From contig OZ260661.1 of the NCBI GenBank assembly GCA_965285935.1, positions 135,222,001 through 135,286,000 on the forward strand: a stretch of 64,000 nucleotides of DNA. The letters run 5' to 3'. Origin of the DNA: Ophelia neglecta. Taxonomy: Eukaryota. Positions 8,647 through 62,700 of the stretch are shown piece after piece. The notes beneath the pieces were generated by a model. It did not search any database. It saw only the letters and a list, made by a program, of their open reading frames with translations, and was not told the DNA's origin. Position 1 is the stretch's first letter. Every line of letters begins with the position of its first letter. A program made the translations under genes and the position numbers.

Positions 8647-11367
8647 TTAACTTGGAAGAGTCCTGGCGTATGTGCTATTTTCCACCACAGTCAAATCCTC
8701 GTCGTTTTCAAAACTAGATCTTTTTTTGCGTTTATCTCTCTTTTGTGGCTGTGCATATAAAGCTGCAACTCCAAGATTGTTAGGTGTATTGTAAGTCATC
8801 GTCGATTTTTTTGAGCTCTTATCAATTTCCGCGTACATTGGGCTAACTTCATCAGAATTAGCATTGTGTCCCGGGGGAAGCTGTGTGTCGTAGGAGTACT
8901 GGTTTGCGGCATTAGCTTGTGAGTTTGCATTCTTATTGCTTTTGGGTGTGCCACGATTGTTGAGGTCTTCCCTTATGTTGTCGTACCTATCATTAGTCTG
9001 TGTGGCCTTGGCCCTGCAGGAAAACAAAAAGTCATTTGATATCACATTAGCCAAACCCGTAAAACATGCAACTATATTACGAGAAGAGATAAGCACTATT
9101 TATATATATTTCAATATTTTCAAATGACACGTACAATTGCACCGTTGACATTGTATATCACTTTGTAATATCACAAGCCTCATTTATAAATTCATTCGCT
9201 TCTGCCAGTCTACTCAAGAAAGATATCTTACCTTCGTTTCAGACACAGAACAAATACCACAGCAATAACTATGATTGTGACACCACCCAACGCCGCTCCG
9301 ATATATATATAAATACTGGTACCTGGAAAAGTAATATTATGATAACATTAAACAATGTATGTTTTTCAGTTTTCTCGAAATATTGTTGGTTGGTGGCACG
9401 TGTCAATCTGACAGCGACCTGTCTCCGAGTATAACATTGATATTAAGGCTAATTTTCTGAAACATTCATAGTTTTCACCTTGATCACTGTTGTCAGAGAT
9501 GTCAGTGGTTGCCTTGGTTGTAAGTTTAGTTTGAGATGTTGGAGCTGATGTATTATTGTATCCTGGTATATTTTTGGTAGAGCCATTCCTTTGCATAGTT
9601 GTCATCGCTGTTGTCGTCGCCTTGTTAGAGACATTGCCTTGTTGGGGTCTTATACTGGATGATATCGAAGTTTCTGCATCTGAGCAAAATGACTTTGCAT
9701 GAACATGGATCGGATATATTAATTTGCGTTGATCAAATTACCAACCGCCAATTTTTTTTCAATGAGTTTGTCTTAACAAAGGGGGCACGTCCTATAATAG
9801 AACCTCAACGAACTACTGAAGATACATTGACTAGAATCAATTTCATTCGATTTACCTTTTTTTTCACATAGAAATCTATAATTTTTTCCTGGATCACCTG
9901 TCCCAGCCCATTTCCCGTCGATGCGCATCCTTGCATATCTCTCATTGACATTGGGTTCCCCGTCACCCCAATTTTGCCATTCATACCAAGCATCACCTAA
10001 CCATTCCCATCCATCTCGCCTCATTGTTTCGTTGTAGATGTTTGTTGAGCTTGAAACGTCCTTTGTTAATCCAATCCAGAATTGGTGCATTCTATCCTCG
10101 GAATCGCAAACCTCCCCCGACATACACTTTATCCTGGTTAAAATGTAAGAATAGGTCATAGCACATAGCCAATACAATAATGCTATAATATAGTAAATCC
10201 GTAAACAATTGAAAAACACACCACCCACCACATTATAGGTATTATTGAGAAAATGTAATGTTAGAATGACAGTACTAGGAAACAAATAGCATAACATTCG
10301 TTTCATTTCAATACTGTAAACATTAAAATTACAAGAATCTGTCTTACAGGTTTTCGACGACGAATTCGTTTTGTTCCTTGTTTTCCACTGATACTAGATT
10401 GGCATGCAATCCTTCACATCTGCTAACCGCTTCTGTGAAATTCCGCAGAATGTCCTTTCCTGAGACATAATAACATCTTCCATCATACGGAAACCACTCG
10501 CCGTCAAATACACATTGATTTGCTACAACTGTAACACAGTAAACATAGCGGGTCATACTCGGGTAATAAACTACCGGGAAGAAATGTTTGAGAGGGCGGG
10601 CATCTTAAGAAATAAATGCTTAGCTTGAAAGAAACAGGAATCACTTATGACTAACACTATAAATAATGCAATGGAGCTATCACATTTTTGTATCAGAATA
10701 AATTATAGGCCCAACAAAAGCAACCCTTCTTCCCCCAGGTACTTTCCCCGTTGTCTTCTGACCGATCAAATACAATAATGTTCGATGTATAAACGTGTAG
10801 TTAGCCAAATTAGGTACGATGCCATGTTTTCAATTAAGCCGCTTGGGGTGTTGTCCTTGGGTTCTTTTTATGAATTTCAAGCCTGTTTTTAGGGTCTTAG
10901 AATATAGCATGGCCATTTCCGACGGAACCAATGACTTTCGGATTATAGGCGTTTTAAGCATCATGAAGTTCCATCTAAAATGCCATTTAACCTGACGAGA
11001 GCTATCCACGTTTGAAGAAGGAACACATTTGGCTCATGAGCCCAAGAGTACTATTCGAACAATCACTGAATCCGTGAGCCTTGGAAATATACATAAACAT
11101 AACCCACTTCACCGCATTTACTATTATCATTTTTACTTATATTCGTAGCCACAAAACAAACTTTACCCGAATACGCACACGCCTTCGACTCCCTTCTTAG
11201 TTCTTCTTTAATTGTAATAGTGAACCAACACGCTAGCTATGAAAATGGAAATATTTGTATGTTCACATTGTATTGAGAACACCGAGGTGTCTCAATATGT
11301 GTATACACATACCTGTACACAATGTGACTGCCACTAAAACACCAAGAAACAGGTCGGTAGGATACAT
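8647..11367 (-). CDS. G1: type I transmembrane C-type lectin-like receptor, tail type A (~390 aa)
   Basis: Exons 11313-11367 (MYPTDLFLGVLVAVTLCT), 10348-10528, 9856-10133 (FWIGL..EPN..FLCE), 9479-9679 (Thr-rich stalk), 9232-9322 (TM IYIYIGAALGGVTIIVIAVVFVLCL), 8647-9013 (tail with YDNI, YSY, YAEI, YNTP, YAQP, ENSTY). All GT-AG, 1173 nt, open. Confidence 0.9.
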
Positions 11368-12608: not shown

Positions 12609-13023
12609 TTATTTTGTAGCTATAAGCAGTGAATTATTGCATGATATATTCAGTTTGCCCTCTCGTACTTCCGTATATGGACCATCAGTCTGCCACCCGA
12701 AGTCTCGTATATCCTCGTATGGACCATCAGTCTGCCACCCGAAGTCTCGTATATCCTTGTAGGGACCATCAGTCTGTAAACCCGAAGTCTCGTATATCCT
12801 CGTATGGACAATCAGTCTGCCACCCGAAGTCTCGTTTATCCTCGTATGGACCATCAGTCCGCGGCCCAGCTTTTCGTTTGCCTTCGCTAGGAGTGTTTAT
12901 ATGGTCAGCTGGTGGCTGAAGGTGGCCTACATACTCATACACAGTAGCAATATATGCTTCATGTCTTGAATATGCTGCTTTGTAATATCCATGACCAGTG
13001 GGGGCGGGGGTGTTCGATCGTTC
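12609..13023 (-). pseudogene. Orphan, 5'-truncated paralog of the Tyr-rich tail exon (frameshifted copy)
   Basis: ERSNTPAPTGHGYY..YEYVGHLQP..DGPYED repeats, homologous to G2-G7 tail; 1-bp insertion in the 43-bp unit 12763-12805; 5' end fused to LINE. Confidence 0.8.
12679..12859. repeat. 42-bp minisatellite, 4 units plus partial
   Basis: Unit GGACCATCAGTCTGCCACCCGAAGTCTCGTATATCCTCGTAT starting at 12679, 12721, 12763, 12806, partial at 12848. Confidence 0.95.
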
Positions 13024-14760
13024 TCGCCAAAGGAACAGAGACGGTTTTCTCGCGGAAGTCTAGCCCACCTGACAGTCTCCAGTAGCAACGAATGCGAGCC
13101 TGTACGCATCCTGGTGACCGCGACGCGAGCAATATTTAGGATACGCGTTTTGATGAGGAATCAGACATCACACGGTTGCGGATCAGGTTATATAATCAGT
13201 CTGTGTATCAAGAGTCTGAAAGTACATGTCTGACTTGGCCACGCGTGCAGCCTGAAGTGTCAAACATAACGGGGAATCGCGAAAATTGACCCGCTATGAA
13301 ACTTTCCCCGAAAAGAGAGCCTGCTTTTCCCGAACAATAGCATCCACATCAAAAACTCCCACCTCCACGAGCACAGAGTGCGTGGTGGTCTGTAGGCGTA
13401 CGCACATTATAGCCTTGAACGTTTCGATATATGCCTGTTTCAGGCAGGCCACTGAGGAAGTCCACCAACTCTCACATCCATAGAGTATGGCAGAAAAGAG
13501 TGCACACTGCCACACGCTCCTTGATGGCATAAGGAGCGTCTCTGTGTGTATTGAGAAAACACAGTAGTCGAGCACATGTCCCTGTTTGGTCGCTATACGA
13601 TCCTGTACCTGTGGAGAGATCCCGCGAATAGAGATCAAGTTGCCAAGATAGCTGTACTGCTCTGTTCGTTCCATGGCCCTCCCAGCAACAACAAACGGAC
13701 GACAGTCACGTGAATTTGATACCATAAACAATGACTTTTTATGGTTGATCCGTAATCCATCGCGTCCCACAAAGTCGCCACCAAAGATCTTCCGTTTACG
13801 CCTCAACGCAGCGCGTGAAGTGGCTAGTTTGGCCGTGTCGTCCACCAGTAGGTGAGCGTGAAGCCAGGCTAGCCAGCCATCATCTGGGAGGGATCGAGGG
13901 ACAACCGCAAGAGGATTGATGAAGAATACAAACAGGATGACAGACAGTGGAGCCCCCTGACGAAGCGCGAGAGTCGCATGAATGGTCGTGTTCCCAATGA
14001 GACTAGCCGTATTTGAAAGTAATGCACACAGTGCCGCCAAGAAACGACCACCACAGCCTTTCACAGCCAGCCAATTTAGTATTATTTGTCTTTTTACGGT
14101 GTCATATGCATTTTCAAAGTCATTAAATGCTATGTACAATGTTTCCTTTGTTCTCCGAGCACGGTCGATAATGAGACGTAAAGTGAGCAGTTGTTTAGGA
14201 CATTCTCGGCCAGGCTGGCCGCCAGCCTGTTCCTGGCAAGAACCCCACCAGCGAGGGAATCGACCTATTAAATAGAGGAGTACACCTCGGCAAGAGAGGG
14301 GATTTCACTGATACCCCGATAGTTCCCAGGAAGATATCGGTCCCCCTTTTTGAATAACATAGTCAACCTCGCCACTAACCATGCGTACATGGTTTTCCCC
14401 CACCAAATCAGATATCATGTTTTATAAGACACCGAATTTGTTGCCATCCGGTATTGACTAGACAGCTGTCAACTCCTCCCTCAATGCCAGAAAGGTACGA
14501 GTCTAGTGTCTTGAATCACTGTGTGCAGGGCCCGCTTCAAGTCATCGGCCCTGGGCTTAGTAATAGCTGACCGTGTCAATGTAAATGTGAATATCTCAGC
14601 TAAGTCCACGTTGACAGTTGGTCTGCCAGACCCAGACTGTCTCATTATGAAATATTCACAGGTGATCGAGTGTACAGGGATAAGGGACCATGGACGCCAG
14701 TCAAGCGTAAAATACAAGCAAACCCAATCAAATATGTCCAAAATTAATCCAGTTCCCAGA
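13024..14760 (-). mobile_element. Decayed, internally deleted non-LTR retrotransposon (LINE; CR1/L2/RTE-X-like), copy a
   Basis: RT motifs FNDFENAYD, LRQGAPLS..LF, LVDD, YSYLG; C-terminal SHSLLLETVRW..PRENRLC; stops and frameshifts; 5' limit approximate. Confidence 0.85.
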
Positions 14761-16506: not shown

Positions 16507-19500
16507 TTAATTAGTCCGTGATACATTCAGTGGATTGTATGTGACATTCGGTGAGAGGGCCTCGTATTCTCTTTCAGTTACTTTTTCCACAGAAGCCCCA
16601 ACAGTCCGCCGCCCGCCTTCTCCTATGTCTTCATATGTACCATGAGTCGGCCGCCCAACTTCTTGTATGTCTTCATATGGACCATCAGTCTGCCGTCCGA
16701 TTTCTTGTATATCCTCGTATGGACCATCTACACATGGACTGTTTAAAGTATCGGCTCGTGGCTGAATGTAGCCTACTTCCTCATATTGAGAAGTAATATA
16801 TTGTCCCTGTCTTGAATTTGCTACGTTGTAATAATCATGGCCAGTGGGGGCGGGGGTGTTTGATCGTACGTCCTCGTGAGCTGCTGCTTCATTGTAATAT
16901 GTGTGTTCTGTGTAAGTCTTCTGTTGGTCTGCTGTGTGTTGCTTCCTGAAAATACATTTATTGATACTTATTATTATGAATATATACATTTGAAATCTCA
17001 TATGATACTTTGGTGTTCTGTTGAGTTTTCACAATTATCACAACTACACAAACAAAAAATCAATATAACCCCGATTGCTGATCCGATTAATAACTTTATA
17101 ATGGTATCACCGACATCACAAATAATATAAATATCAGCTTATTGTCAATTGCATTTTACATTTAGCCTTCAGGATTATCATAGCAGCACATCTTCCATTT
17201 TGTACATCTTCCTGCACGCAGTTTGTTTCCGGATCATTCCCTCCGCCCAACTTTCTCACCGCAACCTATCCGCTCCCAACCACTGTTTCTCACCCCGCCA
17301 CCTGTCTACTCGCTCTGGACGAGAAAGTTTGCAGCCCCTTCAGTCTCTTTCACCCTTTAAGTGTCAGTAATTGGTTCTTTCTTTATTCAGCCAGCCTGCT
17401 CGTCAAGCGCTTTGCCCATCCCTCATCTTCCTGCACAACACACCTACCCTCTCCCCCAAGCATACTGACTCGACCCCTTGGTTATCAGGTCGGGCATACT
17501 GTTGCCCCCTAAAATGTGATAAAAAACACTCTAGCCATGTTTTCCATTTTAATAAAAATATACTCAAAACGGTAAAGCATAAAATATATAACAAGAATAG
17601 ATACCCGGAAAGCTTAAGCAATGGTTTACCAACGATTTAACTATGAAAGGCCCATTTGACAGTCAACATATTTTGCATCTTACTAGCTAAGATTACTAAT
17701 CCGCTTCTCATAAGGACATATCTTACCTTCGTTTCTGGCAGACAACATACAGAACAACAGCAATAAAAGGGATTATCACACCACCCAGCACTGGTCCGAT
17801 ATATAAATAAATACTGGTACCTGGAAAAGTTATAAAATGATACTTTTAGACAAAGTATCTTTGTTCTAGTTTCCACGAAATATTATTGGTCTGGTCTAGG
17901 TGAAGACCAACTAACACTCGGGCCTCTTTGAAGGCTGCCGAAGTTGAACTTAACCTCTTCCATATGTGAAATGTATGTAGGGCATGCTTGTATAATTAAG
18001 GCTAAGCTTTCTCAGCTATACAAACAGCAGATGAACATTTGAGCCACATACCTACTCTGAGGAGTGTAATTTCTGACCTTAAAACATCTGCAATTCCTAA
18101 GTGAACATATGAAGAACATTTGACTGTCAATCAAAATATATCGGACAATGGTGGATTGAGGGATAAGCAAAGAAAGCAGGCTGATCAGATAAAGGAGTTG
18201 GAGGGTCTCTGTGGAAACTTGGAGTCAAAGGTTCTGGAGCAGGAACAATACTTTAGGATAAACAATTTTGAAATTCCGAATATCAAAGATGCGATGTTAA
18301 ACCAAACTACTCTAAAAGATCTCCTTCAATTTGCAGAGAATCATAAACCCAAAGAATAGAATTTTACTTTACATTAAAAAAATCTGTTTTCGATTCGTGT
18401 TTCCAAATTTACAACGACCTGTCTTCATATGCTGCAGTCACATTTAGGAAAATTTTCTGATATACATAGTTTTTACCTTGTTCACTGCTATCAGAGATTT
18501 TAGTGGTTGCCTTGATTGTTGGTTTAGTTTGAGATGTTGGAGTTGATGTATTATTGTATCCTGGTATATTTTTTGTAGAGCCATTCCTAGTAGTCATTGC
18601 TGCTGTCGTCGCCTTTTTAGAGCCATTGCCTTGTTGGGGTCTTATACTGGTTAATATCGCAGCTTCTGCATCTGAGTGAAATGATTTTGCATGAACACGG
18701 ATCGGATACATTAATTTGTGTTGTTCAAATTACCAACCGCCTAAAGTTGCTATTTAAATGAAGCAATGGGTGCACATCCTACAATTGAACCTCAATTTAC
18801 TACTGAAGATACAATGCCTGGAATCTTAATTTAAGTGTATCTACCTTTTCTTTCACATAAAAACCTATAATTATTTCCTAGATCATCTGTCCCAGCCCAT
18901 TTCCCGTCTATGAGCATCTTTGCATATCGCTCATTCACATTGGGTTCCCCGTCACACCAATTTTGCCATTCATACCACGCACCACCAAACCACTCCCATC
19001 TATCTCGCCTCATTGTTACGTTGTCGCTGTTCGCTGAGTTTGAAACGTCTTTTGTTAATCCAATCCAGAATTGGTTCGTTTCTTTCACGGGATCGCAATC
19101 CTGCCCCGACATGCACTTTATCCTGGTTAAAAGGTAACAATTAGTCATAATATTTAACTAATATAATACTTCAATAATAAAATAAGTCTCAAGTGTTCAA
19201 ACATTTGAAAAACACAACATCCACCACATGATAGGCATTATTGAGAAAATGTTTTATTAGGATGACAGTACTAGGTCACACATAGCATGCCATTCGTTTC
19301 ATTTCAATGCTGTAAGCATTAAAATACAAGAATCTTTCTTACAGCTTTTCGAAAACGAATTCGTTTTGTTCTTTGTTTTCTACTGATACTATAGAGGCAT
19401 GCAATCGTTCACATCTGCTAACTGCTTCTGTGTAATTTCGTAGAATGTTCTTTCCTGAGACATAATAACACCTCCCATCATAAGGATACCACGAGCCGTC

Positions 19501-19910
19501 AAATACACATTGATTTGCTACAACTGTAACAAAATAAACACAGCGAGTCATAATCGGGGAATAAACTGCCGGGAAAAATATATGAGAGCGCGGGCAACTT
19601 TAGCAATAAATGATTTACGACAAAGAGGAATCATAAACATACATAAACACAACCCACTTGACCGTATTTACTATTATCATTTTCACTTATATTTGTTCCC
19701 ACAAACCTAACTTTACCCGAATACGCACACGCCTTTAATTCCGCTCTAATTTCTTCGTTAATTGTAATAGTGAATAAACACGCTAGCTATGAGAATGGAA
19801 ATATTTGTATGTTCACATTGTATTAAGAGGTGCTTTAATATGTGTATACACATACCTGTACACAATGTAACTGCCACTAAGACATCAAGGAACAGGGCGG
19901 TAGGATACAT
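16507..19910 (-). CDS. G2: type I transmembrane C-type lectin-like receptor, tail type B (3x YEDI + terminal ITIM-consensus) (~413 aa)
   Basis: Exons 19856-19910, 19343-19523, 18845-19122, 18477-18671, 17727-17820 (TM IYLYIGPVLGGVIIPFIAVVLYVVC), 16507-16945. GT-AG, 1242 nt, open; AATAAA at 16485-16490. Confidence 0.9.
17890..18410 (+). mobile_element. Intronic LINE ORF1-like fragment (stalk-TM intron of G2; homologs in G3-G7)
   Basis: Coiled coil followed by LEQEQYFRINNFEIPNI, resembling the LEQYSRxNNxxIxGI motif of CR1/L2-group ORF1. Copies at ~24835-25350, 31780-32300, 41505-42020, 50330-50910, 60985-61500; absent from the 156-bp G1 intron. Confidence 0.6.
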
Positions 19911-23496: not shown

Positions 23497-26400
23497 TTAA
23501 TTAATCCGTGATATATTCAGTGGAGTGTATGTGACATTCGGTGAGAGGGCCTCGTATTCTCTTTCAGTGACTTTTTCCACAGAAGGCTCAACAGCCTGAC
23601 GCCCGACTTCTCCTATGTCTTCATATGGACCTTTAGTCGGCCTCCCCACTTCTTGTATGTCCTCATATGGACCATCAGTCTGCCGTCCGATTTCTTGTAT
23701 ATCCTCGTATGGACCATCTACACATGGACTGTTTAAAGTATCGGCTCGTGGATGAATGTAGCCTACTTCCTCATATTGAGAAGTAATATATTGTCCTGGT
23801 CTTGAATTTGCTACGTTGTAATAATCATGACCAGTGGGGGTGGGGGTGCTCGATCGTTCGACCCCGTGAGCTGCTGCTTCATTGTAATATGTGTGTTCTG
23901 TGTAGGTCTTCTGTTTGTCTGCTATCTGTTGCTTCCTAAAAATACATTTATTTGTACTTATTATTATGCATATACAAATTTGAAATCGCATATAATACTT
24001 TGGTGTTCAGTTCAGTTTTTCTCAATTATCACTACACAAACAAAAATCAATATAGCCCCGATGGCTAATCGGATGTATATGTATTTAATGGATTCACCGA
24101 CATCACAAATACTATTAATATCAGCTCATTGTCAATTTGCATTTTACATTTAGCCTTCAGGATTATCATAGCAGCTCATCTTCCATTTTGTACCAACTTT
24201 CTCACCGCGACCTATCCGCTCCCAACACCTGTTTCTCACCCCGCCACCTGTCTACTCGCCCTGGACGAGACAGTTTGCAGCACCGTCAGTCTCTTTCACC
24301 CTTTAAGTTTCAGTAATTGGTTCTTTCTTTATTCAGCCAGCCTGCTCGTCAAGCGCTTTGCCCATCCCTCATCTTCCCGCACAACACACCTACCCTCTCC
24401 CCACAACATTCTGACACGACCCCTTGGTTATCAGGCCGGGCATACTGTTGCCCCCTCAAATGTGATAAAAAGCACTCTGGCGATGTTTTCCATTTTAATT
24501 AAAATATACGCAAAACGGTAAAGCATAAAATATATAACAAGAATAGATACCCGGAAATCTTAAGCAATGGTTTACCAACGATTTAACGATGAAAGGCCCA
24601 TTTGACAGTCAACATATTTGGCATCTTACTAGCTAAGATTACTAATCCGCTTCTCAAAAGGACATATCTTACCTACGTTTCTGGCAGACAACATACAGAA
24701 CAACAGCAATAAAGAATATTATCACACCACCCAGCATAGGTCCGATATATAAATAAATACTGGTACCTGGAAAAGTTATAAAATGATACTATTAGACAAA
24801 GTATCTTTGTTCTACTTCCTACGAAATATTATTGGTCTGGTCAAGGTGAAGACCAACTAACACTCGGGCCTCTTTGAAGGCTGCCGAAGTTGAACTTAAT
24901 TTCTTCCATATGTGCAATGTATGTAAGGCATGCTTGTATAATTAAGGCTAAGCTTTCTCAGCTATACAAACAGCAGATGAGCATTTGAGCCACATACCTA
25001 CTCTGAGGAGTGTAGTTTCTGACCTTAAAACCTTTGCAATTCCTTAGCGAACATATGAAGAACATTTGACTGTCAATCAAAATATATCGGACAATGGTGG
25101 ATTGAGGGGTAAGCAAAGTAAACAGGCTGATCAGATAAAGGAGTTGAAGGGTCTCTGAGGAAACTAGCAGTCAAAGGTTCTGGAGCAGGAACAATTCTTT
25201 AGGATAAACAATTTTGAAATTCCGAATATCAAAGATGCGATGTCAAACGAAGCTACTCTAAAAGATCTCCTTCAATTTGCAGAGAATCATAAACCCAAAG
25301 AAAAGAATTTTACTTTACATTAAAAAAATCTGTTTTCGATTCGTGTTTCCAAATTTACAACGACCTGTCTTCATATGCTGCAGTCACATTTAGGTAAATT
25401 GTCTGATATACATAGTTTTTACCTTGTTCACTGCTATCAGAGATGTGTGTGGTTGCCTTCGTTGTTAGTTTAGTTTGAGATGTTGCTGCTGATGTGTTAT
25501 TGTCATCTGGTATACTTTTGGTAGAGGCATTCCTAGTAGTCGTCGCTGCTGTCGTCACCTTGTTAGAGCCATTACCTTGTTGGGGTCTTATACTGGGTGA
25601 TATCGAAGCTTCTGCATCTGAGTGAAATGATTTTGCATAAAATGGATCCGATGTACCAATTTGCGTTGTTTAAATTACCAACCGCCAGAATTTGTTATTT
25701 CAATGAAGCTCAGCAAAGGGGGAACGTCCTACAATTGAACCTCAATTTACCACTGAAGTTACATTGACTGGAATCTAATTCAGTCTATTTACCTTTTCTT
25801 TCACATAAAAATCTATAATTTCTTCCTGGATCATCTGTTCCATACCATTTCCCGTCGATGAGCATCCTTGCATATCCCTCATTGCCATTGGGTTCCCCGT
25901 CACCCCAATTTTTCCAATCATACCAAGCACCACCTAACCACTCCCATCCATCTCGCCTCATTGTTTCGTTGTTGCTGTTTGCTGAGCTTGAAACGTCCTT
26001 TGTTAATCCAATCCAGAATTGGTACATTCTATCCTCGGAATTGCAAACCTCCCCCGACATGCACTTTATCCTGGTTAAAATGGGAGAATAAGTCATATCA
26101 CATTGCTAATACAATAATACAATAATATAGTAAATCCGCTACAATTGAAAACCACAGCACCCACCACATTATAGGTATTATTGAGAAAATGTATTGGTAA
26201 GATAACAGTACTAGGGCACACATAGCATGACATTCGTTTCATTTGAATGCTATAAGCATTAAAATACAAGAATCTTTCTTACATGTTTTCGAAGACGAAT
26301 TTGTTTTGTTCCTCGTTTTCTAATGATACTAGAGAGGCATGCATTCCCTCACATATGCTAACCGCTTCTGTGAAATTTCGTAGAATGTTCTTTCCTGAGA

Positions 26401-30442: not shown

Positions 30443-33400
30443 TTAATTAATCCGTGATATATTCAGTGGAGTGTATGTGACATTCGGTGAGAGGGCTTCG
30501 TATTCTCTTTCAGTGACTTTTTCCACAGAAGGCTCAACAGCCTGACGCCCGACTTCTCCTATGTCTTCATATGGACCTTTAGTCGGCCTCCCCACTTCTT
30601 GTATGTCCTCATATGGACCATCAGTCTGCCGTCCGATTTCTTGTATATCCTCGTATGGACCATCTACACATGGACTGTTTAAAGGATCGGCTCGTGGATG
30701 AATGTAGCCTACTTCCTCATATTGAGAAGTAATATATTGTCCTGGTCTTGAATTTGCTACGTTGTAATAATCATGACCAGTGGGGGTGGGGTTGCTCGAT
30801 CGTTCGACCCCGTGAGCTGCTGCTTCATTGTAATATGTGTGTTCTGTGTAGGTCTTCTGTTTGTCTGCTATCTGTTGCTTCCTAAAAATACATTTATTTG
30901 TACTTATTATTATGCATATACAAATTTGAAATCGCATATAATACTTTGGTGTTCAGTTCAGTTTTTCTCAATTATCACTACACAAACAAAAATCAATATA
31001 GCCCCGATGGCTAATCGGATGTATATGTATTTAATGGATTCACCGACATCACAAATACTATTAATATCAGCTCATTGTCAATTTGCATTTTACATTTAGC
31101 CTTCAGGATTATCATAGCAGCTCATCTTCCATTTTGTACCAACTTTCTCACCGCGACCTATCCGCTCCCAACCCCTGTTTCTCACCCCGCCACCTGTCTA
31201 CTCGCCCTGGACGAGACAGTTTGCAGCACCGTCAGTCTCTTTCACCCTTTAAGTTTCAGTAATTGGTTCTTTCTTTATTCAGCCAGCCTGCTCGTCAAGC
31301 GCTTTGCCCATCCCTCATCTTCCCGCACAACACACCTACCCTCTCCCCCCAACATTCTGACACGACCCCTTGGTTATCAGGCCGGGCATACTGTTGCCCC
31401 CTCAAATGTGATAAAAAGCACTCTGGCGATGTTTTCCATTTTAATTAAAATAAACGCAAAACGGTAAAGCATAAAATATATAACAAGAATAGATACCCGG
31501 AAATCTAAAGCAATGGTTTACCAACGATTTAACGATGAAAGGCCCATTTGACAGTCAACATATTTGGCATCTTACTAGCTAAGATTACTAATCCGCTTCT
31601 CAAAAGGACATATCTTACCTACGTTTCTGGCAGACAACATACAGAACAACAGCAATAACGAATATTATCACACCACCCAGCATAGGTCCGATATATAAAT
31701 AAATACTGGTACCTGGAAAAGTTATAAAATGATACTATTAGACAAAGTATCTTTGTTCTACTTCCTACGAAATATTATTGGTCTGGTCAAGGTGAAGACC
31801 AACTAACACTCGGGCCTCTTTGAAGGCTGCCGAAGTTGAACTTAATTTCTTCCATATGTGCAATGTATGTAAGGCATGCTTGTATAATTAAGGCTAAGCT
31901 TTCTCAGCTATACAAACAGCAGATGAGCATTTGAGCCACATACCTACTCTGAGGAGTGTAGTTTCTGACCTTAAAACCTTTGCAATTCCTTAGCGAACAT
32001 ATGAAGAACATTTGACTGTCAATCAAAATATATCGGACAATGGTGGATTGAGGGGTAAGCAAAGTAAACAGGCTGATCAGATAAAGGAGTTGAAGGGTCT
32101 CTGAGGAAACTAGCAGTCAAAGGTTCTGGAGCAGGAACAATTCTTTAGGATAAACAATTTTGAAATTCCGAATATCAAAGATGCGATGTCAAACGAAGCT
32201 ACTCTAAAAGATCTCCTTCAATTTGCAGAGAATCATAAACCCAAAGAAAAGAATTTTACTTTACATTAAAAAAATCTGTTTTCGATTCGTGTTTCCAAAT
32301 TTACAACGACCTGTCTTCATATGCTGCAGTCACATTTAGGTAAATTGTCTGATATACATAGTTTTTACCTTGTTCACTGCTATCAGAGATGTGTGTGGTT
32401 GCCTTCGTTGTTAGTTTAGTTTGAGATGTTGCTGCTGATGTGTTATTGTCATCTGGTATACTTTTGGTAGAGGCATTCCTAGTAGTCGTCGCTGCTGTCG
32501 TCACCTTGTTAGAGCCATTACCTTGTTGGGGTCTTATACTGGGTGATATCGAAGCTTCTGCATCTGAGTGAAATGATTTTGCATAAAATGGATCCGATGT
32601 ACCAATTTGCGTTGTTTAAATTACCAACCGCCAGAATTTGTTATTTCAATGAAGCTCAGCAAAGGGGGAACGTCCTACAATTGAACCTCAATTTACCACT
32701 GAAGTTACATTGACTGGAATCTAATTCAGTCTATTTACCTTTTCTTTCACATAAAAATCTATAATTTCTTCCTGGATCATCTGTTCCATACCATTTCCCG
32801 TCGATGGGCATCCTTGCATATCCCTCATTGCCATTGGGTTCCCCGTCACCCCAATTTTTCCAATCATACCAAGCACCACCTAACCACTCCCATCCATCTC
32901 GCCTCATTGTTTCGTTGTTGCTGTTTGCTGAGCTTGAAACGTCCTTTGTTAATCCAATCCAGAATTGGTACATTCTATCCTCGGAATTGCAAACCTCCCC
33001 CGACATGCACTTTATCCTGGTTAAAATGGAAGAATAAGTCATATCACATTGCTAATACAATAATACAATAATATAGTAAATCCGCTACAATTGAAAACCA
33101 CAGCACCCACCACATTATAGGTATTATTGAGAAAATGTATGTAAGATAACAGTACTAGGGCACACATAGCATGACATTCGTTTCATTTGAATGCTATAAG
33201 CATTAAAATACAAGAATCTTTCTTACATGTTTTCGAAGACGAATTTGTTTTGTTCCTCGTTTTCTAATGATACTAGAGAGGCATGCATTCCCTCACATAT
33301 GCTAACCGCTTCTGTGAAATTTCGTACAACCATCTTTCCTGAGACATAATAACACCTCCCATCATAAGGAAACCACTGGGCCTCAAATGCACATTGCTTT

Positions 33401-35662: not shown

Positions 35663-36076
35663 TTATTTTGTAGCTATAAACAGTGAATTATTGCATGATA
35701 TATTCAGTTTGCCCTCTCGTACTTCCGTATATGGACCATCAGTCTGCCACCCGAAGTCTCGTATATCCTCGTAAGGACCATCAGTCTGCCACCCGAAGTC
35801 TCGTATATCCTCGTATGGACCATCAGTCTGCCACCCGAAGTCTCGTATATCCTCGTATGGACCATCAGTCTGCCACCCGAAGTCTCGTATATCCTCGTAT
35901 GGACCATCAGTCCGCGGCCCAGCTTCTCGTTTGCCTTCGCTAGGAGTGTTTATATGGTCAGCTGGTGGCTGAAGGTGGCCTACATACTCATACACAGTAG
36001 CAATATATGCTTCTTGTCTTAAATATGCTACGTTGTAATAACCATGACCAGTGGGGGCGGGGGTGTTCGATCGTTC
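35663..36076 (-). pseudogene. Orphan, 5'-truncated paralog of the Tyr-rich tail exon (frame still open; 4x YEDI + YTEV)
   Basis: ERSNTPAPTGHGYYNVAYLRQEAYIATVYEYVGHLQP..(TDGPYEDIRDFGWQ)x4 TDGPYTEV..; AATAAA overlapping the stop; native splice acceptor replaced by LINE. Confidence 0.8.
35733..35912. repeat. 42-bp coding-type minisatellite, 4 units plus partial
   Basis: Units start at 35733, 35775, 35817, 35859, partial at 35901; identical except one synonymous change. Confidence 0.95.
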
Positions 36077-40198: not shown

Positions 40199-43100
40199 TT
40201 AATTAGTCCGTGATACATTCAGTGGAGTGTATGTGACATTCGGTGAGAGGGCCTCGTATTCTCTTTCAGTTACTTTTTCCACAGAAGCCCCAACAGTCTG
40301 CCGCCCGACTTCTCCGATGTCTTCATATGTTACTTGAGTCGGCCGCCCAACTTCTTGTATGTCCTCATATGGACCATCGGTCTGCCGCCCGATTTCTTGT
40401 ATATCCTCGTATGGACCATCTTCACTTGGACTGTTTAAAGTATCGGCTCGTGGCTGAATGTAGCCTACTTCCTCATACTGAGAAGTAATATATTGCCCTG
40501 GCCTCGAATTTTCTACGTTGTAATAATCATGACCAGTGGGGGCGGGGGTGTTCGATCGTTCGTCCTCGTGAGCTGCTGCTTCATTATAATATGTGTGTTC
40601 CGTGTAGGTCTTCTGTTTGTCTGCTATCTGTTGCTTCCTAAAATTACATTTATTGGTACTTATTATTATGCATATATACATTTGAAATCTCATATAATAC
40701 TTTGATGTTCAGTTCAGTTTTTCACAATTATCACAACTACACAAACAAACAATCAATATAACCACGATGGCTAATCGGATGTTAATATATTTAATGGATT
40801 CACCGACATCACAAAAATCATTCCCTCTGCCCCACTTTCTCACCGCGACCTATCCGCTCCCAATCCATGTTTCTCACCCCGCCACCTGTCTATTCGCTCT
40901 GGACGAGAAAGTTTGCAGCACCGTCGGTCTCTTTCACCCTTTAAGTTTCAGTAATTTGCTCTTTCTTTATTCAGCCAGCCTGCTCGTCAAGCGCTTTGCC
41001 CATCCCTCATCTTCCCGCACAACACACCTACCCTCTCCCCCAGCATTCTGACTCGACCCCTTGGTTATCAGGCCGGGCATACTGACCACTCCCAGGCACC
41101 GGGATACTGTTGCCCCCCCCCCCCCCCAAATGTGATAAAAAACACTCTGGCCATGTTTTCCATTTTAATAAAAATATACTCAAAACGGTAAAGCATTAAA
41201 TATATAACAAGAATAGATACCCGGAAAGCTTAAGCAATGGTTTACCAACGATTAAACGGTGAAAACCCCATTTGAAAGTCAACATATTTGGCATCTTACT
41301 AGCTAAGATTACTAGTCCGCTTCTCAAAAGGACATATCTTACCTACGTTTCTTGCAGACAACATACAGAACAACAACAATAAAGAGGATTATCACACCAC
41401 CCAGCACTGGTCCGATATATAAATAAATACTGGTACCTGGGAAAGATATAAAATGATACTATTAGACAAAGTATTTTTGTTCTAGTTTCCACGAAATATT
41501 ATTGGTCTGGTCAAGGTGAAGACCAACTAACACTCGGGCCTCTTTGAAGGCTGCCGAAGTTGAACTTAACCTCTTCCATATGTGGAATGTATGTAGGGCA
41601 TGCTTGTACAATTAAGGCTAAGCTTTCTCAGCAATACAAACAGCAGATGAACATTTGAGCCACATACCTACTCTGAGGACTGTAGTTTCTGACCTTAAAA
41701 CCTCTGCAATTCCTAAGTGAACATATGAAGAACATTTGACTGTCAATCAAAATATATCGGACAATGGTGGATTGAGGGATAAGCAAAGAAAGCAGGCTGA
41801 TCAGATAAAGGAGTTGGAGGGTCTCTGTGGAAACTTGCAATCAAAGGTTCTGGAGCAGGAACAATACTTTAGGATAAACAATTTTGAAATTCCTAATATT
41901 AAAGATGCGAGGTTTAACGAAGCTACTCTAAAAGATCTCCTTCGATTTGTAGATAATCATAAACCCAAAGAATAGAATTTTACTTTACATTAAAAAAATC
42001 TGTTTTCGATTCGTATTTCCAAATTTACAACGACCTGTCTTCATATGCTGCACTCACATTTAGGTGAATTTTCTGATATACATAGTTTTTACCTTGATCA
42101 CTGTTGTCAGAGGTGTCAGTGGTTGCCTTGGTTGTTAGTTTAGTTTGAGATGTTGGAATTGATGTTTTGGTTGATCCATTTCTTTGTATTGTTGTCATCG
42201 CTGTTGTCGTCGCCTTGTTAGAGACATTACCTTGTTGGGGTCTTATACTGGATGATATCGAAGTTTCTGCATCTAAGCAAAGTGACTTTGCATGAACATG
42301 GATCGGTAATATTAATTTGCGTTGATCAAATAACCAACCGCCAATTTCTTTTAAATGAGTTTGTCTCAACAAAGGGGGCACGTCTTATAATAGAACATCA
42401 ACCAACTGCTGAAGATACATTGACTAGAATCAATTTCAGTCGATCTACCTTTTCTTTCGCATAAAAATCTATAAGTATTTCCTGGATAATGTGTCCCAGC
42501 CCATTTCCCGTCGATGATCATCCTTGCATATCCCTCATTGACATTGGGTTCCTCGTTTCCCCAATTTTGCCATACATACCAAGCACCACCGAACCACTCC
42601 CATCCATCTCGCCTCATTGTTACGTTCTCGCTGTTTGCTAAGTTTGAAACGTCCTTTGTTAATCCAATCCAGAATTGGTTCATTTCACTCCCGGGATCGC
42701 AACCCTGCCCCGACATGCACTTTGTCCTTGTTAAAAGGAAACAATAAGTCATACTACTAACTAATATAATACTACATAACAAAATAAGTCTCCACACATT
42801 TGAAAAGCCCAACGCCCACCACATGATAGGCATTATTGTGAAAATATATTGGTAGGATGACAGTACTAGGGAACACATAGCATGACATTAGTTTCATTTC
42901 AATGCTGTAAGCATTAAAATACAAGAATCTTTCTTACATGTTTTCGAAGACGAATTTGTTTTGTTCCTCGTTTTCTAATGATACTAGAGAGGCATGCATT
43001 CCTTCACATCTGCTAACCGCTTCTGTGAAAGTTCGTAGAACCATCTTTCCTGAGACATGATAACACCTCCCATCATAAGGATACCACTGGCCCTCAAAAT

Positions 43101-47665: not shown

Positions 47666-50600
47666 TTAATTAGTCCGTGATACATTCAGTGGAGTGTATG
47701 TGACATTCGGTGAGAGGGCCTCGTATTCTCTTTCAGTTACTTTTTCCACAGAAGCCCCAACAGTCTGCCGCCCGACTTCTCCGATGTCTTCATATGTATC
47801 TTGAGTCGGCCGCCCAACTTCTTGTATGTCCTCATATGGACCATCAGTCTGCCGTCCGATTTCTTGTATATCCTCGTATGGACCATCTACACATGGACTG
47901 CTTAAAGGATCGGCTCGTGGCTGAATGTAGCCTACTTCCTCATACTGAGAAGTAATATATTGCCCTGGTCTCGAATTTTCTACGTTGTAATAATCATGAC
48001 CAGTGGGGGTGGGCGTGTTCGATCGTTCGTCCTCGTGAACTGCTGCTTCATTATAATAGGTGTGTTCTGTGTAGGTCGTCTGTTTGTCTGCTATGTGTTG
48101 CTTCCTTAAAAATACATTTATCGATACTTATTACTATGCATATATACATTTGAAATCTCATATGATACTTTAGTGTTCAGTTCGGTCTTTCATAATTATA
48201 ACAACTACATAAACAAAAATCAATATAACCCCGACTGCTGATCCGATGTATAACTATATAATGGTATCACCGGCATCACAAATTATATCAATATCAGCTC
48301 ATTGTCTATATTTGCATTTTGCATTTAACCTTCAGGATTATCATAGCAGCTCATCTTCCATTTTGTACATCTTCCTGCACGCAGTCTCTTTCCGGATCAT
48401 CCCCTCCGCCCAACTTTCTCACCGCGACCTACCCCCTTCCAACACATATTTCCTGCCCCGCCACCTGTCTACTCGCCGTGGACGTGGCAGTTTGCAGCTC
48501 CCCGTCAGTCTCTTTCACCCGGCGCCATTTTCCATCCATGGAGTAAGTTTCAGTAATTGGCTTTCTCTTTACCTGGCCAGCCTGCTTGTCAAGCGTTTTG
48601 CCAATCCATTTCCTTCCCGCACCCAACACCTACCATCTTCCCCCAGCATTCTGACTCGACCCATTAGTCATCAGGCCGGGCATGCTGACAACATCCAGGC
48701 ACCGGGATCTCCCTCCGGTCACATCATACCACCCCAACCCACATCTACACACACTCCTCCCCCTCACACTCAAACTCGCAACACACACCGATGACTGCAG
48801 CCGACTAGAAATCCGAAACCAGCTGCCGCCTCCCCCACATTGCAACCTAGTGCTACGGCCCAGTCGGGCTTCGATGAAGGCATGGCATCATCGAATCCCA
48901 TTTCATCCCACTTCTCATTATGAATGGGTTAGGATGGGGTTATCAGATGCTAAGTTGGCATCAAGCGATCATAGTCATCTTAACGACGGAGAAGACTGTC
49001 ATGGTAGAGTGTATTATGTCTTCAGAGAGAGAACAAGTAAAAAACTATTTCTTATGCTTCTGTCACCGGGGTATAGCTGAATCCGGTTACGGTTGTTAAC
49101 CATCCAAAATGGCATCCTCCAGCAAAGGTCAGAAATATTTCGATCCGGGATTTTATTTGCTGAAAATAAACTTTTAAAATATGCGAATGTGTTAACTAAT
49201 AAAAGGATCGACCTGCTTGTATGCTCTAGACATTAAAACCGCAAATGAGTCAGTCGTGTGTAAAAAGGTAATTCACTTTTATAGTTTGGGTAACTGACTA
49301 AAGATGGGCGGTAACTTATTATTAATATGGGCTTAATAAAAAGGGATGGAGTATAAGAGCACACATTAACTTGTCGTGTGAAAGGCGAGAAGGAAGTTGT
49401 GCAATTGAGCGCTTAAACTACTTTTATTTTAAATGAAATAAAAAACATACATATTAACATGGTTTGACATTAATCTAAAGGCTAACACATCTTTATTCTA
49501 CAATAAAAATTAAATCCAATTATAATAGAAAAAGAGAGACGCCAATTTAAATGTAATTAAAGGGTTGATACTCGGTAAATTAGAATATAATGCGCCTGAT
49601 AGAAGAGCAAGTTAGACATCGACTGGGCGGGACACATTTGATAGTGAAACATTGACATCGAATCACCGCTGACCTGAACTCAGTACCGCTCAGAAACTCA
49701 AAAGATGCGAGGCAGAGGGCTGCGATCACTGTCAAAGCCATTAATAACAACTAAGGAACACCTTCGCATCTTTAAACTAGTTTATTCTGTGTATATGAGA
49801 AAGGTACAGAATACGCTGACCTTAGCTGGTAGATGGGATTTTGTATGTGGAAACTGCTACCCCACCCACTTATCCCCCAGTGTCGGTACGAATTAGCAGA
49901 TAACATGCGAGATAATTTTCTAAATAATGTTTTCATGCTCTCGGGGATTGCTGTTGCCCCCTCAAATGTGATAAAAAGCACTCGGCAACTATCCACCTTT
50001 TCCATTTTATAATAATATATTCAAAAGAGTAAAGCTTAAAATATATGACAAGACAAGATACCCAGCAAGCTTTAGCCATAGCATACCAATGATTTAACCA
50101 TGCAAGGTACAATTTAACAATCAACATGTTTGGCATCTTACTAACGCTTCTCATAAGTACTTATCTTACCTTCGTTTCTGGCAGGCAACATACAGAACAA
50201 CAGCAATAAAGAGGATTATCACACCACCCAGCAAAGGTCCGATATATAAATGTATACTGGTACCTGGAAAAGTTATATAATATAATGTAAGACAACGTAT
50301 CTTTGTTCTATTTTAAAAGAAATATTATTGGTGTGGTCGGTCTTGAAAATGTTAGGCAATATGTGAGGTAAATGTACGGTATGAGATCGTGTGTGTTTTT
50401 TCCAGGGCTTTAGCACCATGGACTTTTTCAAGGCTTTTTTCCAAACCGAAACCATAAGTATTGGGATATGCAGCTGCCTACTTATAATTTGGCATACAAC
50501 CACCTCTGCCATAGGCTTACAATCACAATGTGTCAACTTTCAGTTGTGAACCCTGTAAAGAAAACTGTAAAGAGAGGGAGGTCTCCAGACCTTCCTGCAG

Positions 50601-59776: not shown

Positions 59777-62700
59777 TTAATTAGTTCGGGATATATTCAG
59801 TGGAGTGTATGTGACATTCGGTGAGAGGGCCTCGTATTCTCTTTCAGTTACTTTTTCCACAGAAGCCCCAACAGTCTGCCGCCCGCCTTCTCCTATGTCT
59901 TCATATGGACCTTTAGTCGGCCTCCCCACTTCTTGTATGTCCTCATATGGACCATCAGTCTGCCGTCCGATTTCTTGTATATCCTCGTATGGACCATCTA
60001 CACATGGACTGTTTAAAGTATCGGCTCGTGGCTGAATGTAGCCTACTTCCTCATATTGAACAGTAATATATTGTCCTTGTCTTGAATTTTCTACGTTGTA
60101 ATAATCATGACTATTGGGGGCGGGGGTGCTCGATCGTACGTCCTCGTGAGCTGCTGCTTCATTGTAATAGGTGTGTTCTGTGTAGGTCTTCTGTTTGTCT
60201 GCTATCTGTTGCTTCCTAAAAATACATTTATTGGTACTTATTATTATGCATATACAAATTTGAAATCGCATATGATACTTTGGTGTTCAGTTCAGTTTTT
60301 CACAATTATCACAACTACACAAACAAAAATCAATATAACCCCGATGGCTTATCGGATGTTAATGCATTTAATGGATTCACCGACGTCACAAATACTATTA
60401 CTATCAGCTCATTGTCAATTTGCATTTTACATTTAGCCTTCAGGATTATCGTAGCAGCTCTTCTTTCTTTATTCTTTATTCGCTTTGCCCATCCCTCATC
60501 TTCCCGCACAACACACCCACCCTCTCCCCCAGCATTCTGATTCGACCCCTTGTTTATCAGGCCGGGCATACTGACCACTCCCAGGTACCGGGATACTGTT
60601 GCCCCCTCAAATGTGATAAAAAGCACTCAGGCCATGTTTTCCATTTTAATTAAAATATACTCAAAACGGTAAAGCATAAAATATATAACAAGAATAGATA
60701 CCCGGAAAGCTTAAGCAATGGTTTACCAACGATTTAACGATGAAAGGCCCATTTGACAGTCAACATATTTGGCAACTCACTAGCTAAGATTACTAATCCG
60801 CTTCTCATAAGAACATATCTTACCTACGTCTCTTGCAGACAACATACAGAACAACAGCAATAAAGAGGATTATCACACTACCCAGCACTGGTCCGATATA
60901 TAAATAAATACTGGTACCTGGAAAAGTTATAAAATGATACTATTAGACAAAGTATCTTTGTTCTAGTTTCCACGAAATATTATTGGTCTGGTCAAGGTGA
61001 AAACCAAACACTCGGGCCTCTTTGAAGGCTGCCGAAGTTGAACTTAACCTCTTCCATATGTGGAATGAATGTAGGGCGTGCTTGTATAATTAAGGCTAAG
61101 CTTTCTCAGCAATACAAACAGCAGATGAACATCTGAGCCACATACCTACTCTGAGGAGTGTAGTTTCTGACTTTAAAACCTTTGCAATTCCTTAGCGAAC
61201 ATATGAAGAACATTTAACTGTCAATCAAAATATGTCGGACAATGGTGGATTGAGGGGTAAGCAAAGTAAACAGGCTGATCAGATAAAGGAGTTGGAGGGT
61301 CTCTGAGGAAACTAGCAGTCAAAGGTGCTGGAGCAGGAACAATACTTTAGGATAAACAATTTTGAAATTCCGAATATTAAAGATGCGATGTTAAACGAAG
61401 CTACTCTAAAAGATCTTCAATTTGTAGAGAATCATAAACCCAAAGAATAGAATTTTACTTTACATTCAAAAAATCTGTTTTCAATTCGTGTTTCCAAATT
61501 TACAACGACCTGTCTTCATATGCTGCACTCACATTTAGGTGAATTTTCTGATATATATATAGTTTTTACCTTGATCACTGTTGTCAGATATGTCTGTGTT
61601 TGCCTTGGTTGTTAGTTTAGTTTGAGATGTTGGAATTGATGTTTTGGTTGATCCATTTCTTTGTATTGTTGTCATCGCTGTTGTCGTCGCCTTGTTAGAG
61701 ACATTACCTTGTTGGGGTCTGATACTGGTTGATATCGAAACTTCCACATCTAAGTAAAATGATTTTGCATGAACATGGATCGGATATATTAATTTGTATT
61801 GTTCAAATTACCAACCGCTAAAATTTGCTATTTCAATGAAGCTCAGCAAAGGGTGCACGTCCTACAATTGAACCTCAACTTATAACTGAAGATACACTGA
61901 CTGGAATCTAATTCAGTCGATTTACCTTTTCTTTCACATAAAAATCTATAATTTTTTCCTGGATCATCTGTCCCGGCCCATTTCCTGTCGATGCCCAACA
62001 TTGCATATCCCTCATTCACATTGGGTTCCCCGTCACCCCAATTTTGCCAATCATACCACGCACCACCAAACCACTCCCATCCATCTCGCCTCATTGTTAC
62101 GTTGTCGCTGTTTGCTGAGTTTGAAACGTCCTTTGTTAATCCAATCCAGAATTGGTTCCTTTCCTTCACGGGATCGCAATCCTGCCCCAACATGCACTTT
62201 GTCCTGGTTTAAAGGTAACAATAAGTCATACTACTTAACTGGTATAATACTAAAATAATGAAAGAACTTCTGTAAGCATTAAAATACAACAATCTTTCTT
62301 ACAGCTTTTCGAAAACGAATTCGTTTTGTTCCTTGGTTTCTAATGATACTAGAGAGGCATGCATAGCTTCACATCTGCTAGCCGCTTCTGTGAAATTTCG
62401 TAGAACCATCTTTCCTGAGACATAATAACACCTCTCATAATAAGGATACCACTGGCCCTCAAATGCACATAGCTTTGCTACAGCTGTAACACAGTAAACA
62501 TAGCGGGTCATACTCGGGTAATAAACTACCGGGAAGAAATGTATAAGAGCGCGAGCATCTTAAGAAATAAATGCTAAGCATTGAGACAAACAGGAATCTT
62601 TGATTACTAACACTATCATTGGTACAGTACAGCTATCATATTATAGTATCAGAATATATTACATGCCAAACAAAAGGAACCCGTCTTCCGCCAGCTACTG

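Follow-up and report, generated by a model that had tools for sequence, protein, structure and literature searches.

Organization of the locus and of the tail exon

The stretch of DNA analyzed here, referred to as the window, comprises 64,000 nucleotides of Ophelia neglecta contig OZ260661.1 (positions 135,222,001 to 135,286,000) and carries part of a tandem array of genes for predicted C-type-lectin receptors, eleven of which end in a tyrosine-rich tail designated tail B. The tail is described for the gene G2, whose terminal exon, exon 6, lies at 16507..16945 (-) and encodes 146 residues, including a split first arginine, among which are 13 tyrosines. This exon is bounded by an acceptor AG at 16947-16946, its first base being 16945, and by a TAA stop codon at 16509-16507, with AATAAA 12 nt past the stop. 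The 13 tyrosines and the motifs listed for them in the initial annotation of this DNA, which was made from the sequence alone, were all recovered at exact coordinates.

The motifs fall into three groups. The membrane-proximal half of the tail (16774..16899 (-)) reads as YYNE (residues 17-20), YYNV (39-42), QYIT (Y50), SQYEEV (53-58) and GYIQP (Y60). It is followed by three YEDI motifs at Y77, Y91 and Y105, which form two overlapping YxxI-x10-YxxI pairs; their period of 14 residues arises because a 42-bp tandem repeat of 3.1 units, detected by TRF at 16598..16728 (-), underlies the coding sequence and encodes three (D/H)G(P/T)YEDI units. The C-terminal segment, YEAL-x5-Y(N/T)PL (16528..16566 (-)), consists in G2 of YEAL at residues 128-131, five residues and YNPL at 137-140, and its VTYNPL fits the pattern of an immunoreceptor tyrosine-based inhibition motif (ITIM). 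The tail is net-acidic, with 24 acidic against 13 basic residues. Its core consists of Y-(E)-(E/D/A)-(I/V/L) sites, five in number, of which three follow one another at intervals of 14 residues.

G2 as a whole consists of six exons with GT-AG at each junction and compatible phases, giving a coding sequence of 1242 nt, that is, 413 codons and a stop. Exon 1 (19856..19910 (-)) contributes the ATG and a signal peptide, 18 codons plus 1 nt ahead of a gt donor, and is kept in 12/12 genes of the array. Exons 2 (19343..19523 (-)) and 3 (18845..19122 (-)) encode the N-terminal and C-terminal halves of a predicted C-type lectin domain, the latter with WIGL, EPN and FLCE. Exon 4 (18477..18671 (-)) encodes a stalk rich in serine, threonine and asparagine with N-glycosylation sequons, while exon 5 (17727..17820 (-)), flanked by ag and gt sites and in a phase that fits the tail exon, encodes a transmembrane helix followed by a cysteine and a basic stop-transfer sequence, VVCQKR(+R). 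The juxtamembrane sequence VC(Q/K)(K/R)R, a cysteine followed by basic residues, had been singled out in the initial annotation as a possible site of palmitoylation and is kept in 12/12 genes.

Domain searches and structure prediction were carried out exon by exon, so that the two halves of the lectin domain were searched separately. Exon 2 matches Pfam Lectin_C positions 3-31 with E=0.009, and exon 3 matches positions 37-107 weakly, with E=0.29; the order is correct, and each match lies under the gathering score because each exon holds half a domain. In a sequence search of PDB with exon 3, every top match is a C-type lectin, at weak E values of 0.2-0.8; the proteins concerned are REG4, conglutinin, MBP-C, SP-A and CEL-IV. 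The signal peptide, the transmembrane helix and the KRRRK stop-transfer sequence are predicted to place the tail in the cytoplasm, in a type I topology. The initial reading of the strip as the tail of a receptor is thus borne out by a signal peptide, a lectin head, a transmembrane helix and a positive-inside stop-transfer sequence.

A variable head and a constant tail

Across the genome (762 Mb in 223 contigs), the tail exon is present in 11 copies, all of which lie in one tandem array at C1:135.238-135.324 Mb, and in two diverged relics. When the window is extended by its flanks, 12 genes share the six-exon plan, G1 having another tail and G2-G12 having tail B. Each of the six exons of G2-G12 has an open frame and splice sites, and so do the five upstream exons mapped in G1. 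Within the window, the further tail-B exons are those of G3 (23497..23935 (-)), G4 (30443..30881 (-)), G5 (40199..40637 (-)), G6 (47666..48104 (-)) and G7 (59777..60215 (-)). A degenerate DNA pattern for GPYEDI gave 33 matches genome-wide, 32 of them inside the cluster, against 3 for the reversed control pattern; therefore, within this genome, the tail is private to the cluster.

The paralogues differ to the same extent at synonymous sites in head and tail: synonymous divergence (dS) is 0.118 for the head (exons 2 and 3) and 0.117-0.119 for the tail (exon 6). At nonsynonymous sites they do not, as divergence (dN) is 0.111 for the head and 0.049-0.051 for the tail. Over the 11 paralogues, dN/dS is accordingly 0.94 in the head (bootstrap confidence interval 0.66-1.46) and 0.43 in the tail (0.28-0.71); no bootstrap of the tail reached 1 or more, and the tail ratio attained the head ratio in 0.5% of bootstraps. 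That dS is equal while dN is halved speaks for purifying selection acting on the tail, rather than for the youth of the copies or gene conversion alone. The exon is also more conserved than its surroundings, with a mean pairwise identity of 93.8%; the corresponding figure is 82.8% over the 300 nt that end the preceding intron, and the 3' flank gives first 76% and then 69%. The picture is that of a variable head and a constant tail, the tail being under purifying selection; the near-neutral ratio of the lectin head could mean that selection on this recognition domain is either relaxed or diversifying.

Several variants were observed among the genes of the array. The copy at C1:135290087-135290524 has its stop codon changed from TAA to CAA, which adds seven residues, and the copy at C1:135315738-135316175 has asparagine in place of Y55, giving SQNEEV; this is the one exception among the 11 genomic copies, and the six copies in the window retain 13/13 tyrosines. 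G6 has two stalk exons, at 51790-51992 and 52247-52430, the downstream one of which, 199 nt long, carries a frameshift and four in-frame stops, and the stalk exon of G10 gave only a partial alignment. The tail of G1, type A (window 8650-9099), carries the tyrosine motifs RYDNI, MYAEI, TYNTP, LYAQP and TYARTL, and no similarity was found when it was compared with tail B.

The first relic, at 12657..13021 (-), is tail-B-like with extra YEDI repeats; its acceptor and initial ~80 nt are missing, and at 13024 it adjoins a long interspersed nuclear element (LINE). The second, at 35687..36076 (-), is a copy of the same relic and LINE unit; over ~2 kb, a length that takes in the LINE portion, the two share 91.6% identity. 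The two units span windows 12657-14304 and 35687-37600, and in both the LINE is a 3'-truncated reverse-transcriptase fragment. The live genes have three YEDI units and the relics four or more, and the two relics look like they were duplicated along with the array. An origin of tail B from a transposable element was considered since an alternative frame of the relic resembles the end of LINE ORF2. It was rejected: no DNA similarity was found between tail B and the LINE, which the relic merely adjoins.

Motif content and predicted disorder of the tail

Motif expectations were obtained from composition-preserving shuffles of the tail, with and without collapse of the 42-bp repeat. At a tyrosine content of 3%, 13 tyrosines in 146 residues have a probability of about 5e-4. 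The general pattern Yxx(LIVMF) occurs 7 times against a shuffle mean of 1.67 (P=1e-4), and 5 times against 1.48 with the repeat collapsed (P=0.006). The acidic form Y[DE]x[LIV] stands out further, with 5 occurrences against 0.28 (P<5e-5), and 3 against 0.21 after collapse (P=8e-4). With three YEDI, the predicted cytoplasmic tail holds at least the two YxxL/I motifs that make up an ITAM (immunoreceptor tyrosine-based activation motif). Judged by these counts, the solid content of the tail is an acidic Y-x-x-aliphatic motif of the pYEEI class, triplicated at a spacing compatible with an ITAM.

AlphaFold2, run on the tail with a shallow alignment of 13 sequences, returned a mean pLDDT (predicted local distance difference test) of 44.7 and a pTM (predicted template modelling score) of 0.10, with essentially no secondary structure. 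A disorder prediction had been proposed at the outset as a check on the signalling idea, and its outcome is consistent with an intrinsically disordered tail.

Relatives of the tail outside this genome

Pfam matched no family to the tail. A word search with the tail, for which proteins of 80-255 aa were eligible, gave no relatives, and an exhaustive HMMER search of 1.84 billion protein representatives gave three low-complexity matches and no credible relative. One of the three, P0003, shares with the tail a stretch of only 16-20 residues, DVRSxxPxPxGHDYYN. It derives from a 1.5-kb metagenome contig (ENA ERZ27241735, contig k141_292828, region 818-1159), the remainder of which looks non-coding; in this contig a tandem duplication encodes DVRSxxPxPxGHDYYN twice, 70-75% identical to tail residues 26-45, a resemblance that may be due to chance or to distant kinship. 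The HMMER search with the tail gave no self match, from which it follows that the proteome of the species is not in the library. Since, in addition, the Shark query described below matches database proteins at no more than 65% identity, the species, and probably its close relatives too, are poorly represented in databases, and the absence of tail relatives is thus weak evidence.

SH2-containing proteins encoded in the genome

The Pfam SH2 model gave at least 86 exon-sized matches in the genome. Among the genes concerned is that of a tandem-SH2 kinase of the Shark/HTK16 type, represented by an open reading frame (ORF) of 685 aa at C8:29348741-29350795 (-) that encodes, in order, an SH2 domain, ankyrin repeats, a second SH2 domain and a tyrosine kinase domain (PK_Tyr 3.6e-92). 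Both SH2 domains have the arginine of the FLxR motif (FLIR and FLVR). Among named proteins, the best relatives of this ORF are of the HTK16/Shark type and come from Owenia, Lingula, Branchiostoma, Capitella and insects, and the closest database protein is P0004 (ENA), 65% identical. The genome therefore encodes, in an intact ORF, the tandem-SH2 kinase on which ITAM-type signalling depends. Nearly all of the gene lies in this one ORF, with just the initial ~20 residues of the N-terminal SH2 domain apparently encoded upstream.

The genome also holds one Csk-type gene with the order SH3-SH2-kinase. This gene (C8:14985110-14986370) has two near-identical complete SH2 exons ~1 kb apart (86-436 and 1149-1385 in the numbering of the locus), which may be either a tandem exon duplication or a pair of mutually exclusive exons. 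Further SH2 matches occur in tandem runs, with about 20 within 260 kb at C2:96400464-96663665, seven in long single ORFs at C12:55497436-55525995 and about ten partial matches at C5:3278762-3606222. Such dense runs suggest that SH2 genes have expanded specifically in this lineage, whose genome also has many receptor tails bearing tyrosine motifs.

A proposed model of the tail as an ITAM-type docking site

The reading proposed here, to which a probability of roughly 55% is assigned, is that tail B is the constrained terminal exon of a type I C-type-lectin receptor and would act as a disordered, acidic phosphotyrosine docking tail of the ITAM type, comparable to that of Draper. Ligand-driven clustering of the lectin heads would lead a Src-family kinase to phosphorylate the YEDI array, a kinase of this family being proposed because the acidic context of YEDI suits such enzymes. 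Once doubly phosphorylated, YxxI-x10-YxxI pairs would be bound by the Shark/HTK16 kinase encoded in the genome through its tandem SH2 domains, and the other tyrosines (YYN, YIQP, YEAL and Y(N/T)PL) would serve as secondary docking sites for further SH2 proteins. What this scheme infers is the expression of the receptors, the phosphorylation of their tails, the identity of the SH2 proteins that bind and the activating outcome. A phosphotyrosine signalling tail is plausible and has moderate support from the selection on the exon, the motif counts, the disorder predicted for the tail and the occurrence of Shark in the genome; the signalling pathway built on the strip of tyrosines is a well-supported prediction and not a demonstrated one.

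A number of observations weigh against this proposal. The spacing of YEDI-x10-YEDI lies outside the x6-8 of a canonical ITAM and fits only the extended x6-12 used for Draper. Two motif classes are scarcely above expectation: YxN occurs twice against 0.78 in shuffles (P=0.17), which is not above chance, and ITIM-like sites (SQYEEV and VTYNPL) twice against 0.29, which is borderline (P=0.03). Conservation was judged from 11 paralogous copies of one genome. Of the 13 tyrosine columns 1 is variable, compared with 41 of the 133 others (one-sided Fisher P=0.067), and Y55 is lost in one copy. The public runs that contain the locus are three DNA-contig runs of one sample with no splice joints, and no RNA run was found for the organism, so expression and splicing are predictions. 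Finally, the Yxx-aliphatic motifs, as sequence patterns, would also fit sorting signals recognized by AP-2.

These points also determine how much of the initial annotation can be retained. That the tyrosines are kept while their neighbours vary holds for G2-G7, where 13/13 are present, and is left without significance by the tyrosine columns alone once the 11 copies, with their one loss, are considered. The test falls short because the paralogues are young (dS ~0.12); when the windows from Y to Y+3 are compared, 6 of 46 columns are variable against 36 of 100 elsewhere (P=0.003), and a special conservation of the tyrosines is thus suggested rather than established. Of the mixture of activating and inhibitory motifs that had been described, the acidic class Y[DE]x[LIV] is well over chance, and the inhibitory side is left at its borderline value; the Grb2-type component finds no backing in the YxN count. 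The comparison with a LAT- or nephrin-like scaffold fares no better, as there is no homology, and Draper and the oyster hemITAM lectins are closer. Taken as a whole, the earlier picture of an activating plus inhibitory, LAT-like condensate goes beyond the evidence.

Alternative explanations

The main alternative is that tail B serves endocytosis or sorting, its seven Yxx(L/I/V) sites acting in the unphosphorylated state as internalization signals for the mu2 subunit of AP-2, on an uptake or scavenger lectin resembling ASGPR, the mannose receptor or DEC-205. In many C-type lectins that serve endocytosis the motifs are tyrosine-based, the present ectodomain is predicted to be that of a lectin and has an EPN-type site, and the enrichment of Yxx(LIVMF) (7 against 1.67 in shuffles) would be expected of such a tail as well. 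A single motif suffices for endocytosis, however, so that the conserved triple repeat is left unexplained, as are the constant acidic residues at +1 and +2 and the six tyrosines outside YxxPhi motifs. As the sole function of the tail, sorting is regarded as possible but rather unlikely, and endocytic and signalling roles may coexist.

An alternative given a distinctly smaller chance is a net-inhibitory or dual switch tail, in which SQYEEV and VTY(N/T)PL would recruit a phosphatase of the SHP2/Csw type that dominates or gates the output. Both sites match (S/I/V/L)xYxx(I/V/L), and in VTY(N/T)PL the tyrosine and the +3 residue are invariant in 11/11 copies. The pair exceeds the shuffles only marginally (P=0.03), however, and SQYEEV is without its tyrosine in one copy and varies at -2 (S/V).

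It is similarly improbable that the conservation reflects the recent origin of the duplicates, or gene conversion confined to the exon within an array that is unexpressed or decaying, with the motifs a by-product of a minisatellite in low-complexity sequence. In favour of this view are the youth of the paralogues (dS ~0.12), the share of the motif content owed to the 42-bp repeat, the two decayed tail relics joined to LINE fragments in the same cluster and the lack of RNA evidence. Against it, neither conversion nor youth alone would yield a halved tail dN at the same dS in head and tail, 11/11 copies have open frames and splice sites in all exons, the exon forms an island of conservation against intron and flank, and the motif enrichment persists after the repeat is collapsed.

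Within the preferred reading of tail B as an ITAM-type docking tail, a more specific proposal is tentative and stands well below even odds: the genes would form a lineage-private immunoreceptor in which a diversifying lectin head is joined in cis to an ITAM-type array read by Shark, the number of units being set by the 42-bp minisatellite and the valency thereby being evolvable.

Comparison with known receptors

The nearest parallel is Draper, an engulfment receptor of Drosophila with type I topology, whose tail contains an ITAM (YxxI/L-x6-12-YxxI/L), an NPxY motif and ten more tyrosines, 13 in total; the ITAM is the first to be phosphorylated, by Src42a, and is bound by Shark through its tandem SH2 domains, after which the remaining tyrosines are phosphorylated and add to function (PMC6219719). 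Like Draper, CED-1 and MEGF10, the receptors of the array are predicted to be of type I and to carry an ITAM-type pair of their own in cis within a long tail; as in Draper, that tail has 13 tyrosines, and an orthologue of Draper's reader kinase, Shark/HTK16, is encoded in this genome. The ectodomains differ, since Draper, CED-1 and MEGF10 have EMI/EGF repeats and the present receptors one predicted C-type lectin domain, borne on a mucin-like stalk. Draper has an NPxY motif and tail B has none, one ITAM in Draper stands against three YEDI in two overlapping pairs here, and there is no sequence homology between the tails.

The oyster receptors CgCLec-TM1 and CgCLec-HTM are reported to signal by a hemITAM via Syk and ERK to IL-17 and TNF (PMC13027682, PMC12842671). 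They are C-type-lectin receptors from spiralians, as those of the array are predicted to be, and have in the tail an activation motif of the tyrosine-based type; CgCLec-HTM, with its C-terminal transmembrane segment, is also of type I. A single hemITAM is described for them, in contrast to 13 tyrosines and a triplicated motif in tail B, and no relationship between the tail sequences was detected.

More distant similarities concern the vertebrate lectins Dectin-1, CLEC-2 and CLEC9A, whose head has a lectin fold and whose own tail bears a YxxL/I activation motif. The vertebrate hemITAM has the form DEDGYxxL, and in tail B an Asp-Gly likewise precedes the tyrosine (DGPYEDI). These vertebrate receptors are nevertheless of type II with a short N-terminal tail, unlike the type I topology and long C-terminal tail predicted here, and their single YxxL follows a tri-acidic stretch, whereas tail B has several motifs with one upstream aspartate and acidic residues at +1 and +2.

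LAT, NTAL and PAG, as well as nephrin, have a disordered tail with many tyrosines, a juxtamembrane cysteine and the potential for multivalent SH2 docking, as is predicted for tail B. Adaptors of the LAT type have a palmitoylated cysteine next to the membrane, a minimal ectodomain that binds no ligand and a dependence on several YxN sites for Grb2/Gads, unlike the predicted lectin ectodomain and the two YxN here, and there is no homology; LAT and nephrin are a more distant comparison than Draper or the oyster lectins. The polymorphic Hydractinia Alr and Botryllus fester families are reported to share with the present array a tandem arrangement and a fast-evolving ectodomain joined to tails with tyrosine motifs, of ITAM/ITIM-like form in those families; their ectodomains are immunoglobulin-like or of other folds, not lectins, and no allorecognition role is indicated for the genes described here.

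If tail B is indeed phosphorylated and read by Shark, the array would represent a spiralian activation module resembling those of Draper and Fc receptors, placed on a diversifying sugar-recognition head, and it would enlarge the small set of invertebrate ITAM systems that have been tested, namely Draper in flies and the hemITAM lectins in oysters. It would also provide a natural series for relating the number and spacing of motifs to tandem-SH2 recruitment, in which the live genes have three YEDI, the relics exceed that number and G1 has a tail without homology to tail B. Tail B belongs to neither the Draper family nor that of the oyster lectins, yet it appears to fit the same operating principle.

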